Under the pieces are notes generated by a model. It was not told the origin of the DNA, made no database searches, and saw nothing but the letters and a program-made list of their open reading frames with translations. From Eukaryota sp. TZLM1-RC (Eukaryota > Protista > Metamonada: BaSk clade), in the NCBI GenBank assembly GCA_040285825.1, contig JAUPSS010000003.1:620001-684000 (forward strand): 64,000 nucleotides of DNA, in the 5' to 3' direction. Numbering within the stretch: position 1 is the stretch's first letter; each line of letters begins with the position of its first letter. Shown piece by piece: positions 2,823-60,820 of this stretch. The translations under genes and the position numbers were made by a program.

Positions 2823-3399
2823 CCAATCATGGAATGGTAAAGTTGGGGAACAGTAAAGGAATACCAGAAGTATTCCCTTAAAAGTATTTGTTAGATCCAA
2901 ATACCAGTCCATATAAATAATAAGTCCCAAAGTATATAACCTATACCACTGCAGTTGATTCCCTTCTTAAAACAATTGTTTCACTCGCCCTAAAACCCTC
3001 TGATCATCGTAAATGATGTTGTCCATTATCATATTTATTTGAACAATAAATATGAAGGTGTAATGTAGGACAGAGTTTTTTTAACTTTTACAATCACTAG
3101 TACTTTGAGAATATTTCCATTTACTTATCTATTTATTATTTTTTCACAAACTAATCTAGTTTTGAACTGTAGTTGAACAGATCATGCCTATCTTAGTCCA
3201 CATTATAGCGGTTTAGGTTGGACGAAGGCTTATATTCTTACTTCGTGTGCTTTTATTGGTGGATGCAGAAACGCAATTTTTGAGTTTTCTGAAAGATTTG
3301 CCGATTGGGAAGATTTATTAATGACAACACAAAGTTCAACTGTTTTTGCATTAAATGAAGAAATTTCAAAAATTGATGTAGAAAAATGGAGTCGATACT

Positions 3400-3950
3400 T
3401 TCCCCAATCATTTAATAGCAATATTACAGAACAGAACTTTTAAATTTAAGATACACTCTTCGAACATTACAGAAACGATTGACTGCAATGTATGAAAATG
3501 TTCTTTATAATAATATATGCAGCTCGGCTGTTTCAATTCAAAATCTTCACTCATTGTTATTGGAAAGGGTGTTTGTGAAAACAAGTCATCAGATTCTTCA
3601 CTTTTTGTAACCATTGTACCACGAAGATTTGGATTGTGTGCCACTAATGAAGCACACACGGGTTATTCTCCCAGTATTGCAAATTTTCAGCATAAAAAAC
3701 TTTACTATCTTTTTCTAAATCTAACAACAGAAATTGAATCAAGTTCAATTTTCATTTTTTCAAAATTAACTTGTAACTCATTCTGAATTTGAGGCACATT
3801 TCCTAACCAACAACTAAGAAACATAGAAGCATCACTACTGTAGCTAGTAAAAGGGACAACAGAATCGTTTATGACAAGATCCTGAGCAGAAGAACCAATC
3901 AGGAGGCATTAGCTCGCATTAAGATGAAGCCCAATATTTTCATATGAATT
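3400..3950 (-). mobile_element. Decayed CRE-like retrotransposon fragments
   Basis: 3725-3950 closely matches 47600-47820 (e.g. GAAATTGAATCAAGTTCAATTTTCATTTTT); 3400-3660 resembles 54980-55200. Confidence 0.75.
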
Positions 3951-5091: not shown

Positions 5092-6072
5092 CTAAACAAC
5101 ATTACCAACTTCCCTTCTTATATTAGGAATCATTCTTGCACGTAATCCACTGACCCAATTGAACCTACAACCCTCACTACTCCACTTGAACAAAACAAAT
5201 GATAACAAAGTCGTCATTGACATTCCCATGACGGTAAACTTACTTACACCATGGCTTAGCTTGGCACAACTCCAAGGAATCACGTTAACCCGAGCTAAAG
5301 TTAGAGACCATTCAACAAAGAGAGGAGATGGTAGCTTGCACAAAAGAAGAATGAAGGAAAGGGTAGACAAACCACTGCCCAAACCAAAGTAAACCAGTCT
5401 GTGTTTAATCGGAACAATCCAAAGAAAAGAATCAATAGTGACCATTCTCGTAGCAATAGAAGTACTGTCAATAAGAAGGGAAAAGAATGAAAAGATAAAC
5501 AAGTGCATAAATACTGACTCGTAGCGACTACAACAGCGATTGGATCGAGACTTGTTGAAGAGGAACAGATTGCGCAAACCAATGAAGGTACCATGAGAAA
5601 GGGTGATGAACGTGGAGAGAGCAGAAGATGAAACGTCATTATAGGAGACTAGACATGCACCAATCAGAAACAAAATGGTATAAGAAATTGAGTTTGTGCA
5701 AATTCTTTTAGAATAAAATACAATGGAACAAAAACAAACGACAAGAACTGATATATTGGAAAGAGATGCGGTGAAAGATAGGGCAGAGATCAGTTGTGAA
5801 AGGGTTAGAGTTTTAACAGAAAGATAATGTAGTAGAAATATTGCAAAAACAGAAGGGAAAGAGACAAGGTTACCAACACAACGACAAACTCTACTTCCAG
5901 AGAGAACCATTGGTAGACAGACTAATAAAGAAGACAGATGATGAACAAAATTGAGAAAATCGGGATCAGTAATATCATTCATGAGAGTTCTATTATAGAA
6001 CCAATATGTATAAGTGGAGCCAATAAAGGTACATAATAGTAACAGAATGAATCCAACACGCCGTATACTCAT
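5092..6072 (-). CDS. Multi-pass membrane protein, probable drug/metabolite (triose-phosphate/nucleotide-sugar, SLC35-like) transporter
   Basis: 326 aa with about 9-10 hydrophobic segments and an N-terminal aromatic-FYNR pattern resembling TPT-family proteins. Confidence 0.5.
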   Translation of the reverse strand: MSIRRVGFILLLLCTFIGSTYTYWFYNRTLMNDITDPDFLNFVHHLSSLLVCLPMVLSGSRVCRCVGNLVSFPSVFAIFLLHYLSVKTLTLSQLISALSFTASLSNISVLVVCFCSIVFYSKRICTNSISYTILFLIGACLVSYNDVSSSALSTFITLSHGTFIGLRNLFLFNKSRSNRCCSRYESVFMHLFIFSFFSLLIDSTSIATRMVTIDSFLWIVPIKHRLVYFGLGSGLSTLSFILLLCKLPSPLFVEWSLTLARVNVIPWSCAKLSHGVSKFTVMGMSMTTLLSFVLFKWSSEGCRFNWVSGLRARMIPNIRREVGNVV

Positions 6073-17110: not shown

Positions 17111-17596
17111 TTGTTTGTAGTTATAAATAATTTTGAAGTGAAAAATGCTGCAGTTAGACAGTATCTAATTCATAGATTGAATACGTGAATATGACATTTG
17201 TTACTTCTTTGTGTGTGAGTACAGTGTATCGTATTGAAATTTGAATTTTCTTCAAATATCATTCAAAATTTGTAAACTTAAAAATTTCACCTTTTTCAAA
17301 ATCTACGAATTAATTTAATGAAGAATTATTGCATTTATTGAATTTGCACACTTAATTAAATTAACTCATAACTAATGGGACGACTATCATTGAACCAAGA
17401 TTTCCTCTACAAAATCTTGATCTGCTTGCTGTCTAGCTAAAGCTTCTCTTATTCGATTGAAAAACCGTGGTAATCTATTAATAATGGCAAATTGAATCCG
17501 TGAACGCCATAAAAAAATTAATTAATTTGAAAGTAATAAATTAAAAATAAAAAAATAAAAAAACTTTCTTTATCTATTCACACAAGGAACACAACA

Positions 17597-44933: not shown

Positions 44934-45938
44934 TGTGAAAATGATATATTTTTTTGTTTTTTGAATTTCTTCTATTCAACGTTCTTGCTTTTGATTTGGT
45001 TTTCTGTAAATTTACTTGGGTCAATCTAAGTTTTTTTAATTTTAAATGAAATTCATTATTTCAGCCATTTTTAAAATATCTTGTTTTAAGTTACGCTTCC
45101 TTCCAAATAAGTCTTAGGTCAGACTATAGTATATGGGAGACTGAGTCTCATATCCGAATATCAAAATCAAACCAAAGGTTCAATCCCCTTCCAAAGACTC
45201 ATTCACTAATGTAAGCAGTCATTCCAACTTTATTTTACCAAACAGCATGGCAAGGAGCCAAAAAGTTGATTTCACAATTCGTTGTCGGCACCCTCAGTTA
45301 GAATGGATGGAGCATATACTAAGTTCCAAGAAGAGAACTTGAACTTTTGTCTTGGAGAAGTACTGTTTTTGTTTTGTATCATTAGATAAATTGAATAAAC
45401 CACTAATAAAAATATTCGGAGCAACTCTATTGTATATTTAGAGATCATGTTTCCGTCTATCAGTTAGTTCACCTGAATGGTTCCTTTTAGATCATGAAAA
45501 CCAAACAATAAAACTATGCTTCAGTCATATGACTCTACAGTACTAGAAGTTTATGTGGTATTCACGCTTGATTGTCGGCTTGCTAAGTAAAAGCTTTCAG
45601 GTTTTCAGTACAACTAATGATAAAAATTGTGAATATTAAATTGATAGAATGTTTTTCTTTATCTCACAACACCACTATTTCCCAAAACATAGCCAAAAAG
45701 TGAGACTAATTTTGAATCGTTCACTAAAACAAAAGATGTAAAATATGGTAAGCGATGTCATTCAGTGTAATTTACATGTAAGACTTATTTCCAATGCAGT
45801 AAATCACATGAGAGTGCATTTGCTCATGCAACAGTTACCTTTCTGCAAACATTTCCTTCAATTCCAATTTATGATTGGTGCTGGGTTCTTGATCCCAAAG
45901 TTCAGATTATACAAATTATTTATTACACAAATCTGTGA

Positions 45939-46198
45939 ACTGTGAATTTCACTTATCATGCATTCCCCTGTGAAATTCACTCCTGTTTTCAACTTTCTCA
46001 ATGTCTACTCACAGGCTGTAAGAGACATGTAGCGTCAATTGACAAAGACAATCATGATCTTCATCAATGGGCTACCTCACTTAAATACACCTACTGCTTT
46101 CACAGAACAAAGCCTCGCGACTTGATGTATCTAAGTGGATCTAACCAAATGCTACCAATGCACTTGTAGATCGGTTTCAAAAGTTTTTAAAACAAAGT
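45939..46198 (-). ncRNA. Orphan copy of the candidate Fanzor omegaRNA scaffold
   Basis: Direct repeat of 57618-57875; the same hairpins are retained and homology stops at the same 3' base. Confidence 0.55.
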
Positions 46199-46199
46199 A

Positions 46200-48295
46200 A
46201 TATATTTTTTTTAATTAATTTTAATTTTATTCTAAACCTATAAATCAACATCTAAAAAATCCATCTCTCCCAAAACAAAAACACTAGATGCAACTCTCTC
46301 ATAGTGAGATCCAAGAGAAAGCAAAGCATCAGAAACCATCTTCAACATCCCCTTAAAAATAGAAAACACAATTCTATTTTGCCAAAACAATCTGTTGAAA
46401 TTTCTGCCAGTTCTTCTCTTTACAATCATTTCAAAATCATCCAAAAACGTAAAGCAGTTGGTGCAAGTGAACCAAAAAGGGAAAATACAAATGGATACAA
46501 ATTGTATTTTGCATGCTGTAGACTGGCCAATTTGGACAAAGGTTCATTGTATTTTTTGAATATAAAATTTTCATCATTTGAAAGGGGATTATGAATTTCA
46601 GAATTAACAAGCCTTTCATTTGAGGCATTACATGGATCAACAGACATTACATCCAATAAAATGAAGCTTCCATCTAATACAGGTAATATGACATCACCTC
46701 TATTATTCTTATGAAAATCATTTTCAGCATCAAACAGATTTGACAACAAAGGTTCCAAGAAGGATTCAATTCTATGAGATTTACACATACAATATAACTG
46801 GTCTCTTACAGCATCATGAACCTTGCTTCTAAAAAGTAATAAAATGTTTACAATTTAACAAATGAGTAGTTGTAATTTCTCAAGAACATTTACAAATTAA
46901 ATTATGAGGTAAATTATCAGGCCAGATAAAGGAACGAAATCTCATATTTAGAGTCCAAGCAGAATCGGATAAGAGAGTACCATAAACTTGTGGAATTGTT
47001 GTTACTAAGGCAGAAGAAGTACTGTCACACATATCTTGTAAAAGATTTGCAAAAGCGGGATTCTTTTTCTTGGCCAAGCCAAGTCTAACATCAAAATCCA
47101 AGCTTTCAAAAATCTTTGACAATTTTTGTTGAAGCTTTTTACAGCAAAACTGTAAATTAAATAGAGATCGGTTTGGAATTTCTTGAATTGATTGAGGAAA
47201 ACATTTGGTCCAAATTTGTGGCGGTAATTTTTCAAGTTCACAAGATAACTCATACAAATAGGGACTACAATTGGGGACTAACAGATGAGAATCATCAGGA
47301 AATCTACGAGAAAATTCATAAATAAAATTTTTGCCACCACCCAAGAATGCTGATTGACACAAAATTGAAGATTTAGTAAATCCAATACCCCCCAAATTTG
47401 CTGAAGAAAATAAGTGACTTTTCAACATTCCTGGTTCTACATCCAATAAATCAGCAAAAAATTCTGTTCTCAATGAATTGAATGAACGACAAAAATCTAA
47501 TGCTATGGAAGGAGCACAAGATCTCAAAATGTGGGTTATTCTCCCAGTGTAGCAAATTTTAAGCATGAAAAATTTAATATGCTTTTCAATATCTAAAGAA
47601 GAAATTGAATCAAGTTCAATTTTCATTTTTTCCAAAATAACTTGCAATTCATTATGAATTTGAGGCACATTTCCTAACCAACAACCAAGGAACTTAAAAG
47701 CATCACTACTATAATTAGTAAAAGGGACAATAGAATCGTTTATCACAAGGTCTTGAGCAGAAGAGCCAATCAGAAGGCATTTGCTGGCATTAAGATGAAG
47801 CCCAATATTTTCATATGAATCGGCAATTTCTTGAGCAACCAATTCTAGTAAATCAAATGAACCAGTCAAGGATATATCATCCATATAAGCAACTATTTTT
47901 ATAGAAGGGTATTTTTACTTAATGATATTTAAAGTTTTGTGAATAGCTAAACAAAACAATAATGGACCTAAAGGATCACCTTGCTTCACTCCAGAAGATG
48001 ATTTAAGAGCAAATGAATTAAAAATTAAATCTGATTCTTTCCCATAAAAATGGTAGAAAAAACTCGATAGCTCAGGAAAATTAGATTTAATAACTTCAAA
48101 AATTGCTTCTCGCTTTACAGAATTAAAAGCATTTTTAAAGTCGAGATTAAAAATAAAATTATTTTCCTCTGCATTAAAAAAGGTATCAGAGGCAATAGCA
48201 GCAACCGAAGCACCATCAATTGTTTTGATTCCAAATTGATGAGGATTCAAAAATCTGAATTTAATCTTATTTTAAGGCATTGTTAAAAATAATCT
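46200..48295 (-). mobile_element. CRE-like non-LTR retrotransposon (RT plus CCHC plus REL), 5'-truncated, frameshifted
   Basis: PHQFGI, LDFKNAFNSV, GVKQGDPLGP, AYMDDI, FKFLG, CKC...HLLNC...HDAVRD, RGDV...DV and KKY; A-rich tail near 46200-46235. Confidence 0.92.
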
Positions 48296-56726: not shown

Positions 56727-57596
56727 TTATTCAGGAAATTTTAAATTAATTTCTTTCAAGATATCAAAAACACATACATTAAAATCAAACTTTGAATTAA
56801 ATTCTTCAATAAATACTCGGATAGTCAGTTTCAATATACTTTCTAATTCTAAATGAAATTCTTGGCTCTTTAACTCCCCATAAACAGTTTTTCTCAATTC
56901 AACCACCTTTTTCCCTATAGACCTCAAATCCAATGATTTAAACAAAATTGAAACACTTCTCTTCAAGGCAATATCAATAGCACTCAGTGTTGACAACGGG
57001 CAGCTTACTCTACTCCCCGTGGAGGGAGGAGATGGTGGTCCATTTTGCCAAATGCAACAAAGAGAATCAACTAAAGAGCCAATGTCGTTGATTTCGGGTG
57101 AATAAACGATATTTGAACAATCCTTAGGAACTTCCATAGCAAGTGCAATGTTGTGAATGGATTTTTCCGGCACTCTTGCCAGCCCAGTCCTCTTTGAATT
57201 CCTTTCTAAACAATGGTGTAATGGGGTATCAAAGTATATTGTGGCAAAAGATGCGTTGCACTGGATAGCTAGTCGTTTGTATGGAAGCCTCATTGAATGG
57301 TAGGGGTGGTTATCATCAATTATTAACAATAGAGGATCCCCTGCTGAGTTCACTGCATTGAAAGCTTTTTCAAACGCAAGTTGTTTCGTTTGATGCCACG
57401 TTTCTCTGTTCCATTCGTTTGAATTGATTGTCTGTGCTATATTGTCTAAAGAAATGATGTTAACATCAACTGATTTAGAAAACTGTAACCTTTGTGTGAA
57501 GTAAGAAGCAAGACCTTGAAGTTTCAAAGCGGATGTAGATTTAAGAGAAGCTGGCAGTCCTATAAGACAGCAAATACACACTGGAGGAGTGTTCAT
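56727..57596 (-). CDS. PSTK: O-phosphoseryl-tRNA(Sec) kinase (PSTK)/KTI12-like P-loop kinase
   Basis: GLPASLKST P-loop, IIDDNHPYHSMR and CLERNSKR...VP. Confidence 0.72.
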   Translation of the reverse strand: MNTPPVCICCLIGLPASLKSTSALKLQGLASYFTQRLQFSKSVDVNIISLDNIAQTINSNEWNRETWHQTKQLAFEKAFNAVNSAGDPLLLIIDDNHPYHSMRLPYKRLAIQCNASFATIYFDTPLHHCLERNSKRTGLARVPEKSIHNIALAMEVPKDCSNIVYSPEINDIGSLVDSLCCIWQNGPPSPPSTGSRVSCPLSTLSAIDIALKRSVSILFKSLDLRSIGKKVVELRKTVYGELKSQEFHLELESILKLTIRVFIEEFNSKFDFNVCVFDILKEINLKFPE

Positions 57597-57617
57597 TTGT
57601 TAGGCCATGACAAAGGT

Positions 57618-57875
57618 ACTGTGAATTTCACATATCATACATTCCCCTGTGAAATTCACTCCTGTTTTCAACTCCCTCAGTGTCTACTCACAGGCTGTAA
57701 GAGACATGTAGCATCATTTGACAAAGACAATCATGATCTTCATCAATGGGCTACCTCACTTAAATACACCTACTGCTTTCACAGAACAAAGCCTCGCGAC
57801 TTGATGTATCTAAGTGGATCTACCAAATGCTACTAAGGCATTTGTAGATCGGTCTCAAAAGTTTTTCAAAAAAGT
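57618..57875 (-). ncRNA. Candidate Fanzor omegaRNA scaffold / element right end
   Basis: Starts ~80 nt after the Fanzor stop; series of hairpins including GATCTACAAATGC/GCATTTGGTAGATC, CACTTAGATACATC/GGTGTATTTAAGTG and a perfect GTGAATTTCAC/GTGAAATTCAC; repeated at 45939. Confidence 0.6.
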
Positions 57876-57952
57876 CAAAAATAAAATAAAAAACTCAAAA
57901 TAAAATATCAGTTTTTCCACAGATTTTGTTTCTGTTTGCTCAGGTTCCCCAT

Positions 57953-59191
57953 TCATCTCCTCAACAGAGCGTCTGGGCAAATGTATATTGCGGGCCACAA
58001 TTCCGCTATCTTCTTAATTTGAATATTTTTTGCAGCGGAAATATCTCTGTCATATACTATTTGACACTCAGTACAAATACGCATCTGCCATGAGATTGCT
58101 TGAATATTTTCTGCCATGCAACAACTTGACATTTAGCCTGTATTAAATTCACTGGTTGACAAGTGCTTCACGTCCTTTTGATAACACAACCATTTTCTGA
58201 AAGCCCTTGCTGATCCATATCGATTGACTTTTCGGCAATGAGAAGGGAAATTAGCAGAACCCACAGCAAGATACAGTTTTTCAGGATGTCCAGCCAGCCT
58301 TTGAAATTTGTTGAGACTCTCTCTGAACCGTCTCTCTTTTCGTCTGCGGTTATCAAATTTAACTATTTTCCATTTCTGGCGATTACTTTCCAAATACACT
58401 TTCCTCCTGACCAAATTCCAATGGTTCAAATATTGGTTGAAATTTTGAACGGAATATTGGTTGGGAGAGTGTTTACTGGGTGAAGGTTTTGTCATGTATC
58501 TTCTGCCAGTTAGACAAGGGATAACTCCACATTGATTATCATTTAAGAAGTAACCACATAATCTTGATTGGCCCAGATCAACACCAATAAGGGGCTTTTC
58601 AGGTAAAATTTCGACTGGTTGTCTACGTCTTCGACGGGGCATTTTTTTAGTGCCCTTCAACTGTGTTTCTCTGGTTTTGTTGGCATTAGGGTCACTTTTC
58701 ATTTCATTTTTTGATCTTCTTTTCTTTTTCGGTGGTTCATCCAGCTCATCTGTGTTTTCTGAGTCATTATTTTTACCTTCAAAGGTCAAAAGCAGTTCAT
58801 TACCATTAGTTTTCAATAAATTTTTGTTAAATCTATTTTTCAAACTTTTTCTGTTGATTTTGAATTTTTGGTAAGGACATTGTTTGAATATTCGTTTCAG
58901 ACAGGTATTTTTGATAAACTTTGTTTTGGAAGATGATCCTTCAATAATTCGAAATTTTTTCACAGAGTGGAAAATTTGTGAAGGTACCTCAATAAATTTA
59001 GAACCTTTGTGAGAGGCTAAAGGTATTATTCTAAATTTCTTCCAGCAATGCATATGAGACAAGAAAGTGAGTAAGTATTGTGAAATTTTAAGATTAAAGA
59101 GAAGAAGCTCACCAATTTTCTTTGATGAAAAGGTGATTTTATCATATGAGGACAGAAGGGAAGCAGAAGTAGAGGTTTTCACTATTCCCAC
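57953..59191 (-). mobile_element. Fanzor nuclease gene, family E, 5'-truncated with a single premature TAA at 58133-58135
   Basis: FRIIPL, KTNG, LIGVDLG (RuvC-I D), LAVGSA and STSEFNTG (RuvC-II E), then in the same frame *MSSCC...RICTEC...YDRDISAAKNI (Zn finger, RuvC-III D); stop at 57953. Confidence 0.88.
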
Positions 59192-59273
59192 ACTTTCCCC
59201 TCACTTCATAAACTAGGTTCATAAACTAGGTATCCTTTGTAAAAGTTTCTGGAATTTCAACTCTATGTAACTC

Positions 59274-59693
59274 ATGAAAGACGCTCTCAGCATCATCAAC
59301 AGATTAGTCCACGATACTTCTTTGTCTAAAGAACGTTTCTTTGTTGGTTTTGAGGATAGATTTGGCGGTGTATTCTTCCTCCCTCTTCACGATTTTCTTG
59401 CCTTATCTGTACCATCTCACAGAATTCGCTACATATCTAAAGGAAACTCAATTCTCTGGTCTCGCACAAAACGAATCAACCTTATTGGCTCTGTTGCACC
59501 TTCTGTTTCTTTATTCTCATCTCCAACACCTGGTGTTCTCTCCCGATATCTTCCTCCTCATGCTACTGGCAGAAAGAATTTCCAGTTACCCTTCTTCTCT
59601 AACATTGTTTCTTGTAGTGTAGGTGTTCATCATACATTGGCACTCACTGCTTGTGGTAATTGCTATGGATTTGGTGACAAAGGTAATAATAAT
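59274..59693 (+). pseudogene. Interrupted gene: MJ1316 (DUF504/LENG9-type RNA end-recognition) domain plus RCC1 repeat
   Basis: IINRLVHD...VGFEDRFGG...VPSHRIRYI...LWSR, then SVGVHHTLALTACGNCYGFG; cut by a MULE insertion at 59694. Confidence 0.7.
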
Positions 59694-60820
59694 GAGAATG
59701 TCTAAATTCACAACTTATTACTAGGATTGTCCAGGTTCAGTTCAGTTCAGGTTCAGGTTCCGAACTAGTTTGAACTGGTTCTGAACCAGTTCACCCAATG
59801 TCTCATATTGTTTTTCTACTACTGTTTATAACTTGTATTCAGTTATTGCAATGACATAAAATAAATGAATACAACCAGTAATGAATAAATATATGCTTTA
59901 TTTTTGTTTAATTTTTGTTTAATTTGGTTTTTCAAACTGTCAAATCAAAATTTATATTTTCCATTTCGTTCATTTCTATGGAAGAAGATACAATATCTTC
60001 TCCTTTCACTTCACCCAACAGGTCGTGGGTTCTGAAATATATGACCCGTCTCCCAAATGGTCTTGTCCGTTGTGACGTTACTACCTGTGAATGAAATGCC
60101 AACCCCTATGGTAAGAACACCGGAAATGGAACCTTAATGCGTCTTCTCCGTAGAAATCATAACTCTGTTTGTATTGTTTTCAAAATAAAAATTTTTTTTA
60201 AAAAAAAGACTATTCTTTTATTATACCGGTTCGGAACTGGTTCAGTTCGGTTCAGGTTCCAAATTTTTTTTTGAACTGAACTGAACTTGGACAGCCCTAC
60301 TTATTACACAACTTCACTTTTTACACAATACTCAAAAACGACAATTTTTGTAACAACAATGAGCAACCTTGAGACTGTAACAACTAAACCCCCTCTTCAT
60401 TCTTTTCCTTCTAAACAAGATCTTGTCCAAACTCTCAAGCTTTGGGCTTTCCAACACGGCTTTGTTCTCTCTACGTCATCTTCTAGTTCTGATTCTTTTG
60501 TCTACGTTATTGGTGATCGAGGTTACCAAAACAGCCGAAATGCTGATGGTGTCCGTTTATCTAAAAAAACTGGTTGTGTTTTCCAGAATTATTACCGACA
60601 ATAAAATGGAGTTTGTTCCAACGTTGAAGTAGAGGGTATTCACTCCTCTCACGGTTTCATAGACAATCTTGCTGGCCGTTACGGCCACTTAGGTCAAACG
60701 GAAGCTTAGTGTTTGTGGAACAGAAGGTATAAGAAAAATTGTCGCACGACAAAATTATGTCGTATTATGAGGTTGTGTAAAACGTGAAGTTGTGTAATAA
60801 ATTGTGAATTAGACATTCTC
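59694..60820 (+). mobile_element. Non-autonomous MULE-like DNA transposon
   Basis: TIRs GAGAATGTCTAA(A)TTCACAA, 8-bp TSD ATAATAAT (59686-59693 / 60821-60828) and a FAR1-like DBD FPSKQDL...WAFQHGF...SKKTGCVF. Confidence 0.85.
59722..60299 (+). mobile_element. hAT-family deletion derivative nested in the MULE left TIR
   Basis: TIRs TAGG(A/G)(T/C)TGTCCA(G/A)GTTCAGTTCAG, 8-bp TSD CTTATTAC (59714-59721 / 60300-60307), subterminal GTTCA repeats and a BED finger remnant from 59978 (SWVLKYM...CDVTTC...GTLMRLLRRNH). Confidence 0.88.

Follow-up and report, generated by a model that had tools for sequence, protein, structure and literature searches.

What does a nuclease-like reading frame, broken by a single stop codon and trailed on the same strand by a run of hairpins, represent in the genome of an anaerobic protist: a working RNA-guided enzyme or the remains of one? 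The enzymes in question are Fanzors, eukaryotic RNA-guided nucleases that are under development for genome editing. The locus lies on the minus strand at 57618-59191 of a 64,000-nucleotide stretch of DNA (assembly GCA_040285825.1, contig JAUPSS010000003.1, positions 620,001 to 684,000), which we call the window. An earlier note on this DNA had taken the locus for an OMEGA (obligate mobile element-guided activity) locus, with a Fanzor nuclease hidden by the way the track of open reading frames (ORFs) had split it. The answer we reach is a fossil: the locus preserves one copy of a Fanzor1 element, bounded by terminal inverted repeats (TIRs), that is a new and very divergent member of its kind and whose function we predict from sequence. 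More fully, we are confident, short of certainty, that 57617-59675 (minus strand) holds a copy, decayed and no longer mobile, of a non-autonomous, TIR-bounded DNA transposon with a Fanzor1-type gene, the candidate guide-RNA module of which has come through intact. The host, listed as 'Eukaryota sp. TZLM1-RC', is Skoliomonas litria; GEM-RC1 and TZLM3-RCL, whose genomes enter the comparison, are Skoliomonas spp., and all are free-living anaerobic metamonads of soda lakes (PMC11603281). The loci we compared with the window are L001, L003, L008, L009 and L010 from S. litria, L002, L004 and L005 from GEM-RC1, and L006 and L011 from TZLM3-RCL.

The minus-strand ORF of 352 aa at 58133-59191 is closed by a TAA (58133-58135), past which the same frame runs on for 59 aa more (57956-58132) until it meets a TGA at 57953-57955. 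Reading through the one TAA gives a continuous frame, as the earlier note had said, and every motif it named sits where it had been placed. The first piece of the remnant (58136-59146, minus strand), equivalent to about residues 255-590 of P0024, a full-length 651-aa paralogue encoded in L003 of S. litria, carries the WED motif LKTNGNELLLTF (58781-58816), the nuclear localization signal (NLS)-like patch PPKKKRRSK (58709-58735), RuvC-I as GVDLG (58571-58585), the strand AVGSANF (58247-58267), where Gly takes the canonical RuvC-II position, and SEFNT with its alternative Glu (58139-58153). The second piece (57953-58132, minus strand, with the TGA stop) supplies the zinc-finger cysteines, in SSCCM (58115-58129) and CTEC (58064-58075), RuvC-III as DRDISAAKNI (58022-58051) and the matches to PF07282 and NF040570. 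With one in-frame TAA parting two pieces that jointly hold all the catalytic motifs, it is natural to ask whether the gene still works, by stop-codon read-through or under a variant genetic code. We find this scarcely credible. Among the 19 window ORFs that are 250 aa or longer, 10 end in TAA, 5 in TAG and 4 in TGA; because all three codons terminate long ORFs, the code is standard, and a variant code in which TAA is anything but an ordinary stop was rejected. The codon at this position is Lys (AAA) in all aligned relatives, which read FNTSK where the window reads FNTG and then stops. The gene has also lost its beginning: set against the intact 651-aa paralogue, it lacks the ATG and, through deletion, some 250 residues at the N-terminus.

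That loss can be placed to the nucleotide. The GTG at 59191 is not the true gene start, the similarity of relatives beginning at about 59146-59172, near residue 255 of the 651-aa protein, and a tblastn search of the window with P0024 likewise opens at P0024 residue 255. At the junction 59171/59172 an internal segment of 841 nt is missing; window position 59172 aligns to both L010 2395 and L010 3237, so the deleted stretch corresponds to L010 2396-3236. With the L010 gene starting at 2501, the deletion took ~105 nt from the end of the 5' leader, the start codon ATG and ~245-250 codons from the front of Fanzor. A T-rich insertion of 54 nt between the stop codon and the RNA module (57867-57920, minus strand) is unique to this copy, and the left inverted repeat has been lost. 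The locus thus has no intact translatable gene, on account of the 841-nt deletion and the TAA, and as judged from its sequence the nuclease gene is dead, the TAA being a true nonsense codon; a working Fanzor behind the split ORFs does not survive scrutiny. What remains of the ORF is nonetheless about 96% identical to the intact paralogue. One of the six S. litria Fanzor loci sampled (the window, L001, L003, L008, L009 and L010) is intact, namely L003 with its 651 aa, and GEM-RC1 has intact ORFs in L004 and L005. P0037 and P0041 are intact nucleases of GEM-RC1.

Is the protein a Fanzor at all? Single sequences say little. In the 59-aa piece the extreme C-terminus of the TnpB models can be recognised (PF07282, E = 3.2e-4; NF040570 guided_TnpB, E = 1.6e-4); against PF07282 full-length relatives score 27.6-34.7 bits, above the 26.3-bit cut-off, and the window fragment alone 21.2 bits, under it. 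The 352-aa piece had no Pfam or NCBIfam match, searches of the PDB with single sequences gave nothing meaningful and found no solved Fanzor, and a shallow family profile reached only the C-terminus of Cas12m in the PDB. An exhaustive HMMER search with P0024 returned 32 proteins among 1.84 billion representatives, and the clusters we looked up came from the three Skoliomonas genomes, bar two or three metagenome proteins; the close relatives are all annotated as TZLM1-RC (GCA_040285825.1), the more distant ones coming from GEM-RC1 and TZLM3-RCL.

Depth in the alignment brought the family into focus. Seven residues do not vary across the 18 members aligned (D444, G550, C597, C612, C615, R621 and D622), and conservation of E587 is 90% or more. 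A profile built from these 18 sequences picks up the Fanzor1 of Spizellomyces, SpuFz (8GKH), with E = 1.3e-7; the match spans profile positions 250-599, WED domain through C-terminus, and brings into register the TDG-type motif, RuvC-I in its DPG-type form, the alternative Glu, the zinc finger, the RD of RuvC-III and a C-terminal PEVF. The invariant RuvC-I Asp, D444, falls on the iDPn of SpuFz, and more distant members read DPG or DPN there. Fanzors are known for having replaced the canonical RuvC-II Glu by Gly or Pro and for using an alternative Glu some 45 residues downstream (PMC10530073, PMC10711439); here G550 is invariant in the AVGSA strand, and E587, 37 residues on in (S/D)EFNTSK, aligns with the DEykTS of SpuFz. 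The TDG motif of the WED domain was described for Fanzor1 (PMC10711439), and its Gly (G369) is nearly invariant in our alignment, within TNG in the Skoliomonas subfamily and TDG in distant members, opposite sITTDG in SpuFz. The zinc-finger (TNB) domain followed by a RuvC-III Asp, as expected of a Fanzor1, is present with C597, C612, C615, R621 and D622 all invariant.

Structure comparison points the same way. The top four Foldseek matches are SpuFz (E 1e-4, probability 1.0, at 12-13% identity), and the top 49 are all Fanzor, TnpB or Cas12-family structures; the TM scores (a measure of overall fold similarity) to SpuFz are low, the cause being a poor model. VIA-align gives Z scores of 10-12 to the RuvC domains of Cas12f, TnpB, Fanzor2 and Cas-phi. 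The ratio of nonsynonymous to synonymous change (dN/dS) stands at 0.09 when species are compared and at ~0.3 when copies are, and the family has therefore evolved under purifying selection. On sequence and modelled fold, then, we file the protein as a very divergent Fanzor1-like family, and the assignment to TnpB/Fanzor made in the earlier note stands, with a TnpB match at the C-terminus and with both family profile and fold pointing to Fanzor1. Our literature search found no paper that pairs 'Fanzor' with Metamonada, and the Fanzor surveys (PMC10530073, PMC10711439) leave metamonads unmentioned.

What of the hairpins? The structured tract, a candidate omegaRNA (reRNA) scaffold of ~258 nt at 57618-57875 on the minus strand, begins ~78 nt past the stop codon, and ViennaRNA recovers on that strand all five of the stems that had been picked out by eye from about 80 nt past the stop. 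The minus-strand fold is worth -89.3 kcal/mol (z = -4.45), and not one of 200 shuffled sequences folds as well; the plus strand reaches -70.4 kcal/mol, 19 kcal/mol weaker than the Fanzor strand. All 72 pairs of the consensus structure form in the window copy, six of them as G·U. Rfam has no family matching the module, and a search with nhmmer found only the two window copies and copies linked to Fanzor genes, while the 28-nt invariant core, looked for as an exact string in metagenome contigs, gave no match. The module is collinear with Fanzor, after the stop codon, in eight other loci (L001, L003, L008, L009 and L010 in S. litria; L002, L004 and L005 in GEM-RC1). GAAATTCACAGT closes every complete copy, with A (seven of nine) or T as the next base, and directly after CACAGT(A/T) the flanks of all nine copies are unrelated. 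The proposed scaffold boundary at 57618 is borne out to within a base: similarity to an orphan copy of 96% identity elsewhere in the window, and to every related locus, stops there or one base later.

Comparison between two species is what gives the fold its weight. At aligned positions the module is 81% identical between S. litria and GEM-RC1, rising to 89-91% in a core of 97 nt; identity in the coding sequence is ~70%, and synonymous sites there have reached saturation. The consensus structure of 72 pairs was drawn from a seven-sequence alignment of the two species, in which 98.8% of cells form a pair; sliding the partners by one to three columns brings this down to 34-43%. Fixed differences between the species at paired positions keep the pair in 14 of 14 cases, five by double changes and nine by compatible changes on one side, and the unpaired cells are singletons in individual decayed copies only. 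Each copy holds 6-12 G·U pairs, and these favour the Fanzor strand because the other strand would carry A·C. That a putative guide-RNA scaffold has been kept by compensating changes is well supported by this comparison, and the patterns of substitution show both the RNA fold and the protein to have been under selection.

Conservation of a fold need not mean a guide RNA. The hairpins might instead be a cis-acting right end of the transposon, that is, subterminal DNA bound by a transposase, or an element in the 3' untranslated region of the Fanzor mRNA that governs its stability or processing. The TIR does sit within the last hairpin, and part of the conservation could come from recognition by a transposase. 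Still, we judge this account unlikely. In duplex DNA, or on the opposite strand, the conserved G·U pairs would turn into A·C mismatches, the fold is the stronger by 19 kcal/mol on the Fanzor strand, and the compensatory changes span 250 nt, well past a TIR. To our knowledge all characterised Fanzor and TnpB loci encode a guide RNA at this very position. Moreover, the guide RNAs of Fanzor1 are reported to build the TIR and the target duplication into their scaffold and to reach ~15 nt beyond (PMC10711439), a design that the window matches, the 3' arm of its terminal hairpin being the right inverted repeat. A candidate guide-RNA scaffold at the right end, stopping at the element boundary as in Fanzor1, is what we find on structural and comparative evidence.

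The ends of the element deserve a closer account. An intact copy measures 3.4-3.8 kb and consists of the left inverted repeat, a left arm of ~1.2-1.4 kb, the 651-aa Fanzor gene and the RNA module of ~250 nt, with the right inverted repeat in the last hairpin of the module. The unit repeated in GEM-RC1 measures 3.44 kb and has a perfect 13-bp inverted repeat, TACTGTGAATTTC at L004 1792 with its complement ending at 5236. The S. litria copies have at least 3.4 kb in common, with left ends that read TACTGTGGTTGAATTTC in L009, TACAGTGG (one mismatch) in L003 and TCTGTGG, without the A, in L008. The gene therefore resides in a TIR-bounded eukaryotic DNA transposon, the repeat being perfect over 13 bp in L004 and imperfect in S. 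litria. A TA adjoins CTGTG...CACAG at most element ends, and could be a target duplication or part of the inverted repeat. In five left flanks AT stands ahead of TA-CTGTG, which makes a (T)ATTA-like target-adjacent motif a tentative prediction. No ORF for TnpA (HUH or serine recombinase) lies within the 3.4-3.8-kb unit, and the ends are inverted repeats.

In the window the right TIR, the reverse complement of TACTGTGAATTTC, occupies 57617-57629 (minus strand), as the 3' arm of the last hairpin. On the other side a remnant of the left arm (59172-59675, minus strand) matches L010 1892-2395 over 504 nt at 99% identity and L009 1621-2111 at 95%. The outer ~0.55-1.2 kb of the arm, left inverted repeat included, is missing, and the further left-arm sequence common to L003, L008, L009 and L010 has no match within the window. 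Because the arm beyond 59675 is absent together with its inverted repeat, this copy is unable to move. We had considered 59247, a breakpoint common to the window and L001, as the left end; it was dropped, as similarity to L009 and L010 runs on to 59675 and the TIRs of full elements lie further out. The OMEGA reading accordingly holds for the RNA module and for the family, and fails as a self-contained unit, since what had been described is the right two-thirds of a 3.4-3.8-kb TIR transposon.

The window holds a second, orphan copy of the module at 45938-46198 (minus strand), without a Fanzor ORF, which is 96% identical, shares the same 3' boundary and keeps 70 of the 72 pairs. Its existence lends some colour to the notion that the 258-nt repeat is an unrelated MITE (miniature inverted-repeat transposable element) that landed by chance beside a Fanzor pseudogene. 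We give it next to no credence: the module occupies the same place past the Fanzor stop in eight other loci of two species, and its terminal repeat pairs with an inverted repeat across the Fanzor gene and not with one beside the module. The bases upstream of the orphan copy are weakly TIR-like (14 of 21 alike to the left inverted repeat, compared by eye in AT-rich DNA), and it may be a miniature deletion derivative of ~275 nt. The earlier note had allowed that its case would fall if the protein lacked TnpB or RuvC similarity, or if the repeat were unlinked to Fanzor ORFs, free of covariation or an unrelated MITE. Each time we found otherwise: the similarity is there, and the module is linked to Fanzor ORFs in eight further loci of two species, covaries in its stems and ends at the end of the element.

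Several observations weigh against the account we favour, that of a decayed Fanzor1-type transposon with a guide-RNA scaffold at its right end. TZLM3-RCL has related nucleases (L006, L011) with no recognisable homologue of the scaffold. We found neither a transposase partner nor an empty site, for which reason mobility and target duplication are read from the ends alone. The covariation comes from two lineages only and therefore amounts to one set of fixed differences; consensus helices 1 and 7 show no variation at all, and the fourth of the five stems first described, TGTCT-CTTACAG / TGTGAG-TAGACA, is not conserved, 20 nt of it being absent in GEM-RC1. Finally, the AlphaFold model is poor overall, with a mean pLDDT (predicted local distance difference test) of 52.8, only the RuvC region exceeding 70 (70-89).

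In S. litria the left arm carries a passenger. A 143-aa ORF at 59274-59702 (plus strand), divergent to Fanzor, encodes an MJ1316 domain (PF04457, E = 1.6e-11) and a partial RCC1 repeat. An ORF of this kind (~140 aa) lies beside Fanzor in the window, L010 (1871-2293), L009 (1777-2022), L003 and L008, at 90-96% protein identity in L010 and L009; in L003 and L008 the similarity is shorter, at 83-87%. Because it recurs in this way it belongs to the repeat and is no single-copy gene of the host, and it is absent from the GEM-RC1 element. Probably it is a captured fragment of a host gene; a role in handling RNA ends for the guide RNA is conceivable and unsupported.

Some features of individual loci may be set down here. 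L003, which encodes the intact P0024, has a ~148-nt deletion at 2849-2851, where the MJ1316 ORF meets the Fanzor leader, and its right end, at 5226, is without the last ~7 nt of the element. Because the element with the intact ORF has an incomplete right end, a working protein and working RNA ends may reside in different copies. Farther along, at L003 7314-7326, there is another GAAATTCACAGTA end, followed by the near-palindromic CAGTGAAT and, after ~120 nt, by a 780-aa gene that runs off the locus; this may mark where a related element ends, one that is perhaps autonomous. In TZLM3-RCL the relatives, at 31-40% identity, lie in L006 (3001-4980; 5065) and L011 (3001-4512; 4652), where only 84 and 139 nt, respectively, separate the stop codon of the Fanzor relative from the ATG of a same-strand host gene (WD40 and CK2-beta), and in L006 the Fanzor N-terminus is fused into an upstream XPG gene model.

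Around the window copy the host begins at once. A gene for a PSTK/KTI12-like P-loop kinase (56727-57596, minus strand) starts 20-21 nt past the element end on the same strand, so its promoter would lie inside the element or it would be read through from the element. Among the nine copies a same-strand ORF starts 20, 63 and 101 nt after the right end in three and more than 500 nt after it in two, with no such start within 1.5 kb in the other four, a scatter that gives no support to docking of right ends at start codons in this family. The short interval up to the kinase ATG, 57597-57616 (minus strand), is the candidate guide-supplying flank of 20-21 nt; by analogy the guide would start at 57617, or at 57616 if the A belongs to the element as part of the inverted repeat or of a TA duplication. 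Repeats of other families flank the Fanzor elements: three further segments of the window (46292-47505, 17333-17518 and 3178-3654) are 90-96% identical to parts of L003, and the region is therefore a mosaic of young repeats.

How might such an element work? TnpB and Fanzor elements encode a guide RNA at their right end and draw the guide from the flank, and it is on this biology that we base the proposed mechanism. In intact copies the module would be transcribed together with ~15-21 nt of flanking DNA as guide, and the RNA would bind the nuclease and direct it to cut matching DNA beside a target-adjacent motif. The target, if the analogy holds, would be essentially the unoccupied insertion site, and cutting there would favour retention or spread of the element. 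Because the window nuclease cannot be made, the window RNA, if it is transcribed, could act only in trans with the protein of an intact copy, for example P0024 in L003. From here it is tempting to suppose that the module outlives its nuclease gene, and that dead copies and solo modules supply guides in trans to the few intact nucleases. We put this down as rather a long shot: the dead ORF remnant is likewise ~96% identical, so that trans guidance is not favoured over the simple youth of the copies. Were it true, Skoliomonas would own a dispersed Fanzor system with many guides.

Whatever becomes of that idea, the family is of interest in its own right. It is too divergent for single-sequence searches and yet keeps every catalytic hallmark of Fanzor1, and comparison of two species was enough for its putative guide-RNA scaffold to be defined from sequence alone. 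The pairing of protein and scaffold is ready for biochemistry, with P0024 or P0037 and their own scaffolds. For the window itself there is a correction to make: the locus is a fossil, and the adjacent 'MJ1316-RCC1 gene' belongs to the element and not to the host.

How, then, does the Skoliomonas element stand beside the systems already known? TnpB and its omegaRNA (ISDra2, IS200/IS605, IS607) share with it the RuvC fold (Z 11.6 to 8H1J) and a right-end guide RNA whose guide would come from the flank, with element retention as the presumed role. The Skoliomonas element differs from them in having no TnpA partner and in ending in inverted repeats, not in the subterminal hairpins of IS200/IS605, and its protein is much larger, with an active site rearranged around the alternative Glu. 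Fanzor2 proteins are of TnpB size and usually reside in IS607-type elements. The mimivirus ApmFz2 (9B0L) has the same alternative-Glu RuvC (Z 11.5, root-mean-square deviation 4.2 over 156 residues), but both the profile and the whole-protein fold of the Skoliomonas family rank Fanzor1 first. It is with Fanzor1, as known from SpuFz1 (8GKH) and the elements of insect viruses (PMC10711439), that the likeness runs deepest: a protein of ~650 aa with a WED motif that may answer to TDG, a DPG-type RuvC-I and an NLS-like patch; Gly at RuvC-II, the alternative Glu ahead of an NTS..C zinc finger, and RuvC-III as RD..AA.N; and a gene alone in a non-autonomous TIR element, with a structured RNA at its right end that takes the TIR into its last stem. 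There are differences too. The Skoliomonas sequence is very remote, at 12-13% identity in Foldseek alignments, its subfamily has DLG and TNG for DPG and TDG, its host is a metamonad, the S. litria element carries the ORF with the MJ1316 fragment, and the copy in the window is dead.

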